From Saccostrea echinata (taxonomy: Eukaryota), in contig NW_026889762.1 of NCBI RefSeq assembly GCF_033153115.1, forward strand, positions 372,001-436,000: a stretch of 64,000 bases of DNA. The letters are read 5' to 3'. Made by a program: the position numbers and the translations under genes. Below, piece by piece: positions 31,003-53,826 of the stretch. Below the pieces are notes generated by a model that was not told the DNA's origin, did not search any database, and saw only the letters and a program-made list of their open reading frames with translations. How positions within the stretch are numbered: position 1 is the stretch's first letter; each line of letters begins with the position of its first letter.

Positions 31003-31065
31003 ATGTGGAATATGCAGTGTCTGCAAGTTGAAAGTACTGCTTTTTATTTACTCCTTCTTACAAAG
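31003..31065 (+). CDS. Exon 1: signal peptide MWNMQCLQVESTAFYLLLLTK
   Basis: Acceptor cag at 30998-31000 implies an upstream 5'UTR exon. ATG at 31003; donor aag|gtaac. Confidence 0.7.
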
Positions 31066-51800: not shown

Positions 51801-53826
51801 TTTTCAAAGTGCGTTAACTTGGTCTCAAATTTCCAGGGTCAACCTAATTGCAATATAAATTATTTTGTGATAAATAAAGTCTTACATGTACAAAATATAT
51901 AAAGAAAATCAATTCTCAAAAGGGAAAAGCGTTGTTTTGGTATGATCTAATTACATTAGAAAAGGGACATGACTCTATGAATTCATCAAATATTTTGCTA
52001 AAGTAAACAAAAGAAAATTTTATGATTGCATAATCTGATTGAAACATTGAAGATACTATTTTAGAGGGTCATCACTTAAATTCAAAACATCCATTTGAAA
52101 TCTATACCACCTGTATGATAATATGAAATGCAGATAGATGTTTTGAATTTAACTTTATACTTTTTGATAAAGTTAGAAATGTTTTAATAGGTAGTAAAAA
52201 CAGATTTAGAAAAATGTAAAAAATGTAGAAATCCCCTTTAAATTTTGATTAAGTATGTATTTATCATTTCATTTAGTTTCTAAATACCCAATTCAATGAA
52301 AAAAAAATATCCGTACTAAGGAATAAGCGAAAGAACTAAAGTTTTGATAACCTCTACTAAATAAATATCATAATGAGCTGATCACGTTGAATCTGAAACA
52401 AACCTTAACGTCTTATTTTTTTCCCTTCGTAGTCAGCTCTTTATTGGACGTACATCCCATAAGCATTACAGTACAATATTGTATATTTATCAATTATATA
52501 CATAGTACAATAACATGCTATACACTTCCAAACTTGTAATACTTACATTCTATTATTTACCTAATTGTTTTATATATTTTGGTATGAAGGGTTTTACGAT
52601 ATCTATGAATGTCATTATACACAGTCTTATTCAATTAGTATTTCTTTAAAGTAGAAAATATGCCAAATTAACAAAAATTTACAGTTTGAGACACGAGTTA
52701 TGCCTTTTTTCTATAGTTGTCTTTAGAACAAAAAAAATATTTAAGCTCAAAGTAATGTTTTTTTTAATCATCTCATTTGCTGTCTACTGCTCATGTATTA
52801 TACAGTTTATTCAAAACAAAAACATTTCTGTTGCATTTAATTTGATGTTAAATGAAAAACTGACCGGAGTAGACATTCTGTGTTCAATATAATAGTTATA
52901 ATCAAGAATTTTATCTCTCAGAATTCAATAATGTTGGGAAAGGGAATGTAACAGGGAAGTAGCATCGTGTTTGAAAGTGAGGGGGGCGGCAGCCAGAGAA
53001 AAAAAAAAAACTGACAAGCAAAAAAAAAGGGGGGATGTCCAACTCGAAAACTCTATTTCGTGTGTTTGTGTGTGTGTGTGAGGGTGTGTGTGAGGGTGTG
53101 TGTGAGGGTGTGGGGGGGAGGGGGTAGGTTCCAACTTCTTTCAGTACCAACTTTATTCAAACACTACTACATTACCCTTATTTGACTATACTGCAACAGA
53201 AGTAGGGGGGGGGGGGGTCAATGAAAATTTTCAATAGTGAAAAATTATATTTGGAAAAAAGTAGGGGGCAGGCCCCCTTCCCCCTTTCTGTTGCTACGTG
53301 CCTGTGTATCGCAGGTGAGTATTGTGACACATTGGAACTTAACATTTTTTCATATATACATTTATGGACAAAATCTATTGTACACTAATTATGAACTTTT
53401 ATAATGCGATTAATTATTCAATTTTGCAGGCACAAATTTCCGAGAACGCAAAGCGGTTGACAATTTCTGAAAGCCATGTGTCAATAAAACAAGGTGAAAA
53501 TTTATGTATGTAATACAGTTATATGTATAAACCAATGTTGTATTACAGTTTAACATTTGTAACAACTCAATACATGTACCTAACAAGTCATTCAGTTATA
53601 CAGAAGTGTGATCTTTTCTTCAGGTTTCGACTCGAAAACATTTATGTTTTTCTTGAAAAGGCACAATTTGCAGGATTGTACGGAGATTTTGTATAAAAAT
53701 AAAATTGACTGCCTTCAAACATTCTTTGAACTAGATGAGGGCAACTTAGAATCATTCGGCCTTGAGTATGGACAAGTGCTAAAATGCAAAAGAACAAAAA
53801 AGACAATACTGACCGAATCGTCTTAA
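31003..53826 (+). CDS. Uncharacterised type I transmembrane protein: signal peptide, Cys-rich ectodomain, TM, cytoplasmic SAM-like domain (325 aa, 10 exons)
   Basis: join(31003-31065,31166-31397,31517-31624,37018-37084,38282-38376,38925-38975,39061-39129,39259-39284,53430-53493,53624-53826). All introns GT-AG; phases 0,1,1,2,1,1,1,0,1 are consistent; 978 nt with no internal stop. AATAAA near 53973. Confidence 0.75.
31166..31397 (+). CDS. Exon 2: Cys-rich ectodomain
   Basis: INDVQLTACNVSLSTLQKVTNCPRTENELKGAIKRKDCDSLAEVQKCTQPGNFSYHCVINVWKNETYEVCAPAIYSQ(G). Strong splice sites. Confidence 0.9.
31517..31624 (+). CDS. Exon 3: Cys-rich ectodomain
   Basis: RCLEFNQYGKVIQELDINCVEKGCPKRFRSAEILS(Y). 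Donor gtacaa is weak. Confidence 0.85.
33403..34306. mobile_element. MITE with 26-bp TIR and 2-bp TSD
   Basis: cgcaggtaggttaaggcttcccgaag vs cgcagctatgttaaggcttcccgaag. TA on both flanks. Confidence 0.8.
34468..34955 (-). mobile_element. Penelope-like RT fragment
   Basis: LTTNLYDKHHDFKFSIVNLPYLYSYIPLTAAYGFYDSLVIRYERACS. Upstream PMGT...LLADLFLYLYE and RYIDV motifs. Degenerate. Confidence 0.75.
35449..35850 (+). mobile_element. Penelope-like element 3' portion
   Basis: STYEQCLNPVKLLTNKLMKQYYQESRLK, followed by gcgacgggtgtgactggactacaggggatgcttactcctcaatggcacctgatcccacctctgg. Confidence 0.75.
37018..37084 (+). CDS. Exon 4: last ectodomain Cys and stalk
   Basis: (Y)AVCSSLVSGSNSKPCFSGHWN(I). 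tag acceptor, gtgagt donor. Its phase 1->2 bridges exons 3 and 5. Confidence 0.75.
37125..37990 (-). mobile_element. Penelope-like retroelement, 5'-truncated and degenerate
   Basis: ILEFLIDDINVVFGDQVFQQTVGNSMGTNCAA and FRYIVDALSINNGYFHSYVDSIYPSELEIKDTTES, plus the shared 3' motif. Confidence 0.85.
38282..38376 (+). CDS. Exon 5: transmembrane helix
   Basis: TTIFLQVFSGVLFFLLAIVSVLLF-KTRKNER(G): hydrophobic run followed by a basic stop-transfer segment. Confidence 0.85.
38693..38786. repeat. ~95-bp hairpin / miniature MITE
   Basis: agtcgtctctacagaccaata...gtgaat and attcacaacaagcgagtctattggtctgtagagatgact form inverted arms. Confidence 0.7.
38925..39284 (+). CDS. Exons 6-8 (38925-38975, 39061-39129, 39259-39284): cytoplasmic linker
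   Basis: TQEQKSEEIGLTSRER(A) / DTKNLTGEEFTNDAIDKITVDY(E) / SRKRRKKE. All AG..GT. Confidence 0.75.
39737..46160 (-). mobile_element. 5'-truncated L2/CR1-group LINE whose 3'UTR is split by a DNA transposon
   Basis: RT ORFs 45443-46144 (NYRPVSIL, FQSGFK, LDLQKAFDNVDH), SQGSILGPLLFLIYVNDM, YADD and 44417-44899. The 3'UTR motif gacctcattggaaataag...gggttatcc and the aataaa(tga)n tail lie at 39737-39960. Confidence 0.85.
40057..44332 (+). mobile_element. 4.3-kb TTAA-targeting DNA transposon (Sola-3-like) with decayed spliced transposase remnants
   Basis: TIR cagcctgtctctgagaaaaacatgcaaaat vs cagcatgtctcagagaaaatcatgcaaaat; TTAA at both flanks. 42182-42800 gives YSCPDSLGQKVF...KHL, GWALKCRKR, QKVKDYL and AEELKKVTDENDERFYERHEWLSSSQ with frameshifts. 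The superfamily label is inference. Confidence 0.75.
47240..47715 (-). mobile_element. Penelope-like element 3' portion
   Basis: Clear similarity to 37125-37490; contains ggtgggtgtgaccggtcaacaggggatgcttacccctcctgggcacctgatccaacctc. Confidence 0.8.
48300..49228. mobile_element. Palindrome-terminated non-autonomous element (Crypton-like)
   Basis: ~80-bp arms at 49064-49225 around gc-ttc-gc. The arm motif gtttacacatcga(t/c)aaattct is repeated at ~48373. Confidence 0.6.
49730..50056 (+). mobile_element. tRNA-derived Deu/Nin-type SINE (diverged copy)
   Basis: Colinear similarity to 5430-5776, including ggatgagacctc and the caatca tail. Confidence 0.85.
50920..51830. mobile_element. Degraded DNA element with aacgcactttgaaa subterminal repeats
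   Basis: Direct copies at 50927-51080; inverse tttcaaagtgcgtt at 51747-51815. Confidence 0.5.
53430..53493 (+). CDS. Exon 9: AQISENAKRLTISESHVSIKQ(G)
   Basis: ttttgcag acceptor, aag|gtgaaa donor, phase 0->1. Confidence 0.7.
53624..53826 (+). CDS. Exon 10: SAM-like (sterile alpha motif) domain and stop codon
   Basis: FDSKTFMFFLKRHNLQDCTEILYKNKIDCLQTFFELDEGNLESFGLEYGQVLKCKRTKK fits the SAM pattern (FL...L......L....ID.L..L..L....L..FGL..G...K). Acceptor cttttcttcag. Confidence 0.8.

Follow-up and report, generated by a model that had tools for sequence, protein, structure and literature searches.

A probable ten-exon oyster gene joining a cysteine-rich ectodomain, a predicted membrane helix, and a divergent SAM domain

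The ten exons at positions 31003-53826 on the plus strand of the window (the whole 64,000-nt stretch of Saccostrea echinata DNA analyzed here) probably make up a real and intact gene of an oyster, encoding a protein that crosses the membrane once. As part of the same favored explanation, its predicted topology is type I, its ectodomain is modeled as a 10-Cys alpha/beta module of about 115 residues that its sequons predict to be glycosylated, and the SAM-tailed form is likely to be one old branch of a larger family, a branch also found in Ostrea, whose 7-8 genes here lie in tandem on a single contig. The first-pass annotation had proposed ten AG/GT-bounded exons giving a 325-aa open frame, and this was reproduced: all acceptors are AG, all donors are GT, the phases are compatible, and the spliced gene of 978 nt encodes 325 aa with a single stop at its end. 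Its parts, with donors written as exon/intron, are as follows.

31003..31065, plus strand: exon 1; aa 1-21; carries the start codon and a signal-like N-terminus; donor AAG/GTAACA in phase 0
31166..31397, plus strand: exon 2; aa 22-99; first six conserved ectodomain Cys; sequons NVS, NFS, and NET
31517..31624, plus strand: exon 3; aa 99-135; second ectodomain portion, with three Cys; donor T/GTACAA at 31624/31625
37018..37084, plus strand: exon 4; aa 135-157; last piece of the ectodomain plus stalk; holds the tenth conserved Cys and an additional stalk Cys
38282..38376, plus strand: exon 5; aa 157-189; completes the NIT sequon; predicted TM helix and basic stop-transfer residues
38925..38975, plus strand: exon 6; 51-nt cassette; 17 hydrophilic juxtamembrane residues
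39061..39129, plus strand: exon 7; aa 206-229; conserved cytoplasmic segment ending in ...ITVDY
39259..39284, plus strand: exon 8; 26-nt polybasic micro-exon (ESRKRRKKE); donor GAG/GTAATT
39285..53429, plus strand: intron 8; 14,145 nt, repeat-swollen
53430..53493, plus strand: exon 9; aa 238-259; linker ahead of the SAM domain; donor AAG/GTGAAA
53624..53826, plus strand: exon 10; aa 259-325; predicted SAM domain and stop codon

Nine of these exons have tblastn matches among RefSeq proteins from Saccostrea cucullata, S. echinata, and Ostrea edulis, and exon 2 alone matches the S. cucullata protein P0001 with E 1.4e-31 in a search among 1.8 billion proteins; the gene model is therefore not a product of chance. 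The exon 2 search returned 639 clusters at E<=1e-3. Exon 1 matches the N-termini of P0003, P0169, and P0172 (tblastn), exon 5 aligns with the TM segments of P0001, P0169, and P0172, and the micro-exon has counterparts at the same position in P0001 (ESRKQRKK) and P0003 (DSRQRRKGKE). Relative to P0001, exon 3 is 89% identical to residues 73-108, exon 4 matches residues 110-130 (tblastn) and has a collinear block in the closest paralogue (paralogue A), exon 7 is 87% identical to residues 163-185, and exon 9, whose acceptor has a pyrimidine tract, aligns to residues 222-243. The codon split across the exon 3 donor junction encodes the Y seen in homologues; a donor at 31617 was discarded because only the one at 31624 restores this conserved residue. 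Search and folding tools were run on single exons or on the homologue proxies P0001 and P0008 rather than on the spliced protein, and the joined exons were used for the frame and length check, for local comparison with fetched proteins, and for one tree row. The neighboring coding remnants are indeed broken, as had been noted, and were identified as decayed retroelement ORFs. Upstream, 50 nt before exon 1, the assembly has a gap (N, 30797-30953).

The remaining exon, exon 6, has no counterpart in any homologous protein compared (P0001, P0151, P0169, and P0172), and a nine-exon, 308-aa model built from homologues alone was replaced by the ten-exon one once the conserved 51-nt cassette was found. 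Open 51-nt AG..GT cassettes are frequent by chance, with 25 inside the introns of this gene. Paralogues A and B retain the exact length of exon 6, its open frame, and both of its splice sites, which paralogue C has lost. Judged by this conservation, exon 6 is probably genuine and possibly alternatively used.

The N-terminus is signal-like, as had been claimed, and only that: an E sits within its hydrophobic core, and the basic n-region present in the paralogue P0169 is absent. Eleven Cys lie between it and the membrane helix, namely the ten family-conserved residues of the 10-Cys module recognized in the first-pass annotation and one further Cys in the stalk; all the ectodomain landmarks of the oyster family (the ten Cys and the invariant CP, HC, and EVCA) are present in exons 2-4. 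The four extracellular sequons that had been listed are all located N-terminal to the helix (NVS 31, NFS 73, NET 85, and NIT 156), the last being created across the exon 4/5 junction. For the single TM helix expected from that reading, one hydrophobic helix is predicted, spanning about residues 158-183 with a hydropathy of 2.55 across 19 aa, and the counterpart of exon 5 in the AF2 model of P0001 is a long helix.

Pfam searches with the window exons and with 104 family members gave no match for the ectodomain, and a profile search of the PDB gave none either. Its model resembles no solved structure in a Foldseek comparison against the PDB, none in a wider structural search (VIA wide), and none of the BFVD viral models (Foldseek), while the ESM Atlas returned solely unnamed mollusc clusters, at 0.80, with no named cluster among them. 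Toxoplasma MIC1, the best Foldseek row, was dismissed as noise (prob 0.07, rmsd 10 A). A thrombospondin type 1 repeat identity was likewise dismissed: no family member matches the TSP_1 or TSP1_spondin profiles, and the 14 short stretches in which the 1480-aa TSP1-repeat protein P0036 matched exon 2 are read as a Cys-spacing artefact. The proposed comparison of an AlphaFold model by Foldseek thus brought up neither a well-characterized family nor a solved structure, and the earlier statement that no named family has this architecture holds for an ectodomain so devoid of Pfam matches and solved look-alikes. The modeled module is a candidate new disulfide-rich fold.

The genome contains at least 150 copies of the Cys-rich exon (150 scored matches among 239 candidates), 142 of the 150 scored matches being free of stops, and the named relatives all come from Saccostrea, Crassostrea/Magallana, or Ostrea. 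These counts bear out the proposed lineage-specific expansion, and by sequence comparison the ectodomain-plus-TM family appears so far only in true oysters (Ostreidae). LOC105348129 and LOC117692276 are examples of its Crassostrea members. A TM-like segment follows the ectodomain in 132 of the 148 relatives with enough sequence. The cytoplasmic tails vary across the family: polybasic tails are common, P0046 has a STAND NTPase-ankyrin tail, and P0002 is a short-tailed relative of 212 aa. The SAM branch of the window gene is small, with 8 SAM exons, all on the window contig. Its supposed orphan status did not survive, as the RefSeq annotations of several oysters include relatives under the label 'uncharacterized protein LOC...', and the same-genome paralogue LOC133186410 (P0169) has exactly the architecture of the window gene. 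The suggested resemblance to an expanded oyster family is borne out. For the window copy and its two closest paralogues, no matching protein of 169-539 aa was found in a collection of 5.8 billion proteins, and the description of the gene as hidden may therefore hold for the window copy alone, which could be unannotated, annotated outside 169-539 aa, or unexpressed. Literature searches by word or LOC identifier found no paper on the oyster Cys-rich family.

The cytoplasmic part of about 140 aa comprises a conserved ...DY motif, the polybasic micro-exon, and, at the C-terminus, a SAM domain of divergent sequence. Pfam showed no kinase domain in the window exons or across the 104 family members, and this cytoplasmic part has no TIR or other catalytic Pfam domain, in agreement with the claimed absence of kinase and TIR domains. 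The SAM-like exon product (aa 260-325) is modeled as five helices packed into a compact bundle of about 65 aa, which can be superposed on SAM domains of solved structure; the Smaug SAM is among its structural neighbors. A profile built from the 8 SAM exons of this genome matches the BICC1 SAM (E 1.1e-4), as well as ANKS6 (1e-3), ANKS4B (4e-3), and further SAMs below these, and SAM_2 is matched at E<=0.1 by seven of the eight copies. Single sequences fall short of the Pfam gathering cut-offs, here taken as an operational and not a defining criterion of SAM membership: the window exon reaches 20 bits against the SAM_EPH score of 27, and P0006 and P0020 reach 16.8-17.2 bits against the SAM_2 score of 20.5. 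Single-sequence phmmer of the SAM exon against the PDB gave only chance matches (nitrophorin, thioredoxin), with SAMs being found only by the family profile. Although single sequences score below those cut-offs, the profile match and the predicted superposition uphold the claim of a SAM-like terminal domain; by both, the tail is a divergent member of the SAM superfamily rather than a textbook one. A homodimer prediction with two SAM-exon copies gave no answer either way (score 0.00).

In the mechanism that we propose, the ectodomain would bind an extracellular ligand, receptor clustering would then bring the SAM tails together, and these might self-associate or recruit SAM-containing cytosolic partners, so that signaling would proceed by scaffold assembly instead of catalysis. 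Ligand-driven clustering together with SAM-assembly signaling is a tentative proposal, and an immune role, suggested by analogy, is more doubtful. More speculative again is the broader reading that the 10-Cys module is a new fold, arisen in or confined to true oysters, and that it would form the sensing head in a large and hitherto unrecognized receptor superfamily of 150-240 genes per genome with interchangeable tails, whose SAM-tailed branch would signal by SAM assembly. The output modules of such a superfamily would include SAM, STAND NTPase with ankyrin repeats, zinc-finger-like, and polybasic tails, and the whole would add to invertebrate biology a class of receptors, so far undescribed, for recognizing patterns or self.

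A less likely but credible alternative accepts the gene as described but sees in it a surface protein for adhesion, self-recognition, gametes, or larval settlement, in which the SAM domain and polybasic stretch merely anchor the protein to the cortex, membrane lipids, or RNA-protein scaffolds. Some SAM domains serve passively as scaffolds or bind RNA or lipids, and the Smaug SAM is one of the structural neighbors here. Polybasic tails are widespread in the oyster family, and overall dN/dS is below 0.5, with no diversifying selection on the ectodomain among four close copies. Against this, the large tandem expansion, the restriction to one lineage, and the swapping of tails, including that of P0046, fit the pattern seen in innate-immune receptor repertoires of invertebrates, a likeness and no more.

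The presence of the Cys-rich/TM exons and the SAM exons in one gene depends on the junction 39284->53430, which joins exon 8 to exon 9. Among the repeats in intron 8 is a reverse-transcriptase element at 44417-46144, decayed and on the minus strand, with RVT_1 matches on broken ORFs. Paralogue A is collinear with the window gene from exon 1 to the SAM exons, with about 1.6 kb where intron 8 sits. All eight SAM exons of the genome are on the contig and strand of the window, and seven of them follow a Cys-rich exon of that strand at a distance of 8-35 kb. In a tree of the ectodomains, all ten SAM-tailed proteins fall within one 16-row subtree (SH-aLRT 93), and the window gene is inside a six-member, all-SAM clade (SH-aLRT 99). 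Three full-architecture relatives (P0013, P0026, and P0029) are uninterrupted ORFs on mRNA-sized Logan contigs of 1.4-2.3 kb. The comparison of dN/dS suggested by the first-pass annotation gave 0.19-0.42 for exon 2 (against three paralogues) and 0.09-0.23 for the SAM exon, with dS to the nearest paralogue at about 0.33; on these sequence-derived estimates, the Cys-rich and SAM exons are both under purifying selection. Together, the collinear paralogue, the exon pairing, the tree, and the selection estimates give indirect support to a single gene with the claimed Cys-rich ectodomain/TM/SAM architecture.

The window copy could nevertheless stop after exon 8, with the SAM exons 14 kb away left unjoined and a product short-tailed like the 212-aa P0002. 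We consider this improbable, even though its intron 8 is repeat-filled and about nine times the length of the paralogue A interval, read-through past the exon 8 donor meets a stop after 7 codons, and no full-length protein for this copy was found in the public collection. The GAG/GTAATT donor and the pyrimidine-tract acceptor are intact with fitting phases, the SAM exon of the window copy has evolved since duplication at a dN/dS of 0.12-0.23, as expected for a used exon, and paralogue B spans even more, with 34 kb from exon 2 to its SAM exon; such intron lengths are nothing unusual for an animal genome of 923 Mb. Slighter still is the prospect of a young pseudogene, that is, a duplicated, apparently intact, but silent copy. 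The tandem array, repeat-swollen introns, weakened signal-like N-terminus, and missing public protein model would suit it, but the 978 nt are free of internal stops and frameshifts, 18/18 splice dinucleotides are intact, and both tested exons show purifying selection at the distance (dS ~0.33) of the nearest paralogue. Finally, a chance chain of open AG..GT segments, which the AT-richness of the sequence makes frequent (the introns alone hold 25 cassettes of 51 nt), is already refuted by nine exons that match database proteins in order and frame and by a structure collinear in the paralogues.

The favored reading, a real SAM-tailed membrane protein of an oyster family, draws attention to a set of 150-240 surface proteins per genome that had escaped notice until now. 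Lacking adaptive immunity, oysters nonetheless survive among dense microbes, and OsHV-1 and Vibrio cause mass mortalities that are a major problem for aquaculture. A confidently modeled ectodomain without Pfam or PDB matches, combined with swappable tails, makes these proteins candidate lineage-specific recognition receptors. The 7-8 genes of the SAM-tailed branch offer a tractable set for asking which ligand the head recognizes and whether signaling needs anything beyond a SAM tail. Should the family instead prove to be one of ordinary adhesion proteins, a large block of 'uncharacterized' oyster genes would still have been named and delimited.

The closest likenesses to the window gene are within its own clade, which includes P0001, P0169, and P0006. 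S. cucullata LOC134276906 (P0001) and S. echinata LOC133186410 (P0169) are alike in architecture from end to end, with 69% and 61% identity, respectively, over the joined model, and O. edulis LOC125675901 (P0006) shares the 10-Cys ectodomain, TM helix, ...DY motif, polybasic stretch, and SAM tail; the window copy differs from these three models in its added 51-nt cassette and its 14-kb last-but-one intron. Likenesses to better-known systems are partial. The Eph receptor tyrosine kinases have an unrelated ectodomain, and neither the window exons nor the 104 family members have a Pfam match to their ephrin-binding, FN3, or kinase domains; the cytoplasmic part of about 140 aa is also too short for a kinase. 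SARM1/TIR-1, which does not act as a surface receptor, pairs its tandem SAMs with ARM repeats and a catalytic TIR domain, whereas the window gene has one SAM and no TIR or ARM match in Pfam. Oligomerization through mid-loop and end-helix surfaces is a property of many SAMs, though not of all. The SAMs of tankyrase, BICC1, and ANKS3/ANKS6 belong to soluble cytosolic proteins that form head-to-tail polymers or pairs, unlike the predicted membrane-bound product described here. Expanded bivalve TLR, C-type lectin, and SRCR repertoires with swapped cytoplasmic modules are described in two published accounts (PMC4346834, PMC10140915). These use ancient, widespread domains (LRR, CTLD, SRCR, TIR, and death), whereas the oyster ectodomain is undescribed and so far oyster-restricted; however, they share with the oyster family a tandem, lineage-specific expansion to hundreds of members, in which one extracellular module is combined with varied tails.

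The gene model was built by reading the DNA and by mapping homologous proteins with tblastn onto the window, an AT-rich stretch of animal DNA (GC about 0.31) that corresponds to G000:C13:372001-436000 in an assembly of 923 Mb. The homologue-derived first model held nine exons encoding 308 aa; scanning the sequence for cassettes of fitting phase added a 51-nt open segment bounded by AG and GT (exon 6, 38925-38975), giving ten exons, 978 nt, and a 325-aa product. This is exactly the open frame that the first-pass annotation had proposed, and its junction 39284->53430 is the exon 8-to-9 junction of the rebuilt model. 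Each of the nine introns opens with a GT donor and closes with an AG acceptor, and introns 1 to 9 on the forward strand measure 100, 119, 5393, 1197, 548, 85, 129, 14145, and 130 nt. A run of N marking an assembly gap (30797-30953) ends 50 nt 5' of the start codon.

Exon 6 has no counterpart in any homologous protein compared, and open 51-nt AG..GT cassettes are frequent by chance (25 within the introns of this gene). In the same-contig paralogues A and B its length, open frame, AG, and GT are all retained; in paralogue C there are indels and the donor is lost. Judged from sequence, the exon is probably real and possibly subject to alternative use. In the joined product, the four expected sequons (NVS, NFS, NET, and NIT) all lie N-terminal to a single hydrophobic helix at about residues 158-183, and the last exon resembles a SAM domain, as had been suggested. 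The proposed 10-Cys module stands as ten conserved cysteines in the family alignment, with the mature ectodomain and stalk of the window product itself holding eleven.

Single sequences of the SAM tail stay below threshold in Pfam (SAM_EPH, 20 bits versus 27; SAM_2, about 17 versus 20.5), and a single-sequence phmmer search of the SAM exon against the PDB returned only noise. A profile from the alignment of the eight own-genome SAM exons nevertheless recovers known SAM families, matching BICC1 SAM (E 1.1e-4), ANKS6 (1e-3), ANKS4B (4e-3), and then further SAMs.

Six indirect lines of evidence agree in suggesting that exons 1-8 and the SAM exons belong to one gene across a 14-kb intron. The closest paralogue, A (C13:552 kb), matches the window gene collinearly from exon 1 through the SAM exons, and the distance from exon 8 to the SAM exons is about 1.6 kb there versus 14 kb in the window gene. 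All eight SAM exon copies in the 923-Mb genome lie on this contig and on the forward strand, with a Cys-rich exon 8-35 kb 5' of the SAM exon in seven of them; the SAM-tailed tandem array comprises at least seven genes on one strand at G000:C13 ~217-670 kb. For the eighth SAM exon, at 1.81 Mb on the same contig, a paired Cys-rich exon was not found. The same parts are joined in RefSeq models of S. cucullata, S. echinata, and O. edulis, and the complete architecture is also encoded by uninterrupted ORFs of more remote relatives on mRNA-sized Logan contigs of 1.4-2.3 kb. In a maximum-likelihood ectodomain tree of 109 rows, which omitted incomplete ectodomains, identical sequences, and non-SAM rows whose sequence beyond the domain was shorter than 90 residues, all 10 SAM-tailed rows fall inside one 16-row subtree (SH-aLRT 93), and the window gene sits in a six-member, all-SAM clade (SH-aLRT 99). 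Among the non-SAM rows there, P0157 and P0285 are shorter proteins from the 90%-identity clusters to which SAM-tailed P0013 and P0029 belong. Comparison of the four close copies puts dN/dS at 0.19-0.42 in exon 2 and at 0.09-0.23 in the SAM exon (dS to the nearest paralogue is about 0.33), indicating that both have stayed in use. The SAM exons carry no independent start. If the exon 8 donor is left unspliced, the frame stops seven codons on, so a short isoform is possible.

Repeats and other features of the window are as follows.
34464-34786, 37257-37790, and 47244-47714: interspersed repeats, each matching several sites in paralogue introns at 67-80% identity
44417-46144, reverse strand: decayed non-LTR-type reverse transcriptase inside intron 8, several broken ORFs with RVT_1 matches
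~53050-53135: (CA/GT)n-like microsatellite about 300 nt 5' of exon 9; ORFs across it read HT or CV runs
57839-58951, forward strand: retroelement pol fragments 3' of the gene, RVT_1 (E 2e-12), then RT_RNaseH_2 (E 5e-18)
61949-62347, forward strand: THAP zinc-finger domain in a 132-aa ORF (E 1e-6)
5433-5507, forward strand: tRNA-Thr (CGT), predicted by ARAGORN
The decayed reverse transcriptase explains part of the growth of intron 8 relative to paralogue A.

The gene belongs to a large family. The oyster expansion surmised at first reading was borne out by at least 150 genome matches: exon 2 gives 150 scored matches in its own genome (239 candidates), 142 of them stop-free, in tandem clusters over about two dozen contigs, and 639 clusters at 50% identity in a library of 1.8 billion proteins. 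The named relatives, from which the taxonomic range is drawn (unnamed Logan entries carry no taxonomic placement), all come from Saccostrea, Crassostrea/Magallana, or Ostrea, each labelled "uncharacterized protein". The description of the gene as hidden may hold for the window copy alone: relatives exist as such entries, but this copy may be unannotated, because a search of 5.8 billion proteins, at lengths of 169-539 aa, matched neither it nor paralogues A and B. Only paralogue C was found there; its exon-2 residues are identical to those of S. echinata P0169.

Among relatives with enough sequence, a TM-like segment directly follows the module in 132 of 148, and tails have a median length of 112 aa. 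SAM tails occur in 21 of 285 fetched proteins, near-duplicates and isoforms counted; other tails are polybasic or low-complexity. RKRRKK-like runs recur at 39259-39284 in the window and at the cytoplasmic C-termini of many relatives, and may contact membrane lipids or act in the manner of nuclear-localisation signals. A conserved segment rich in Cys and His and resembling a zinc finger (SCGH...CP.C...), for which no Pfam match was found, closes the tails of P0113 and P0134 (408-417 aa). The RefSeq model P0046 (S. echinata LOC133204001, 1123 aa, on another contig) joins the family's Cys-rich head and a TM-like segment to an nSTAND3 NTPase and ankyrin repeats; it describes a STAND protein anchored in the membrane or else merges separate genes.

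Eight columns of the ectodomain alignment are invariant; seven are Cys and one is His, and they lie in the CP, HC, and EVCA landmarks. The structure predicted for P0008, a homologue made up of only a signal peptide and the ectodomain, reaches pLDDT 97-98 over residues 30-145; it combines a pair of short helices with an antiparallel sheet of four strands and ends in a further helix at the C-terminus. P0036, a 1480-aa TSP1-repeat protein of metagenome source, aligns with exon 2 at 28% identity over 14 short segments; since TSP1 models match no family member, we dismiss this as a Cys-spacing artefact.

The layout is that of a predicted type I membrane glycoprotein, whose extracellular module evolves under purifying selection and whose intracellular SAM domain has been kept with it since before the Ostrea/Saccostrea split. 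Ligand-driven clustering of such receptors would concentrate the SAM tails, which would then self-associate or recruit SAM partners; a conserved ...DY motif may supply a phosphorylation site, and the polybasic micro-exon may contact acidic lipids or importins. By analogy with SAM behaviour in Eph receptors, tankyrase, BICC1/ANKS, and SARM1, signalling through SAM-mediated assembly is a tentative proposal, to which we give somewhat less than an even chance. The leading alternative for function is that the protein serves adhesion or recognition and that its SAM tail is a passive scaffold. An immune role is likewise a tentative proposal, less likely than not.

Under SAM-mediated assembly, the oyster protein would work like a kinase-less Eph-type receptor, although it shares only the SAM tail with Eph receptors and lacks the other features of Eph membership. 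Kinship with SARM1 is excluded because the oyster protein has no TIR domain. We found no description of the family in the literature, and databases know it solely as "uncharacterized protein". As a class, it is of an already known kind, the single-pass receptors that carry an adaptor domain as their tail and belong to an expanded repertoire in invertebrates; its new elements are an ectodomain with neither Pfam family nor structural neighbour and a bare SAM tail.
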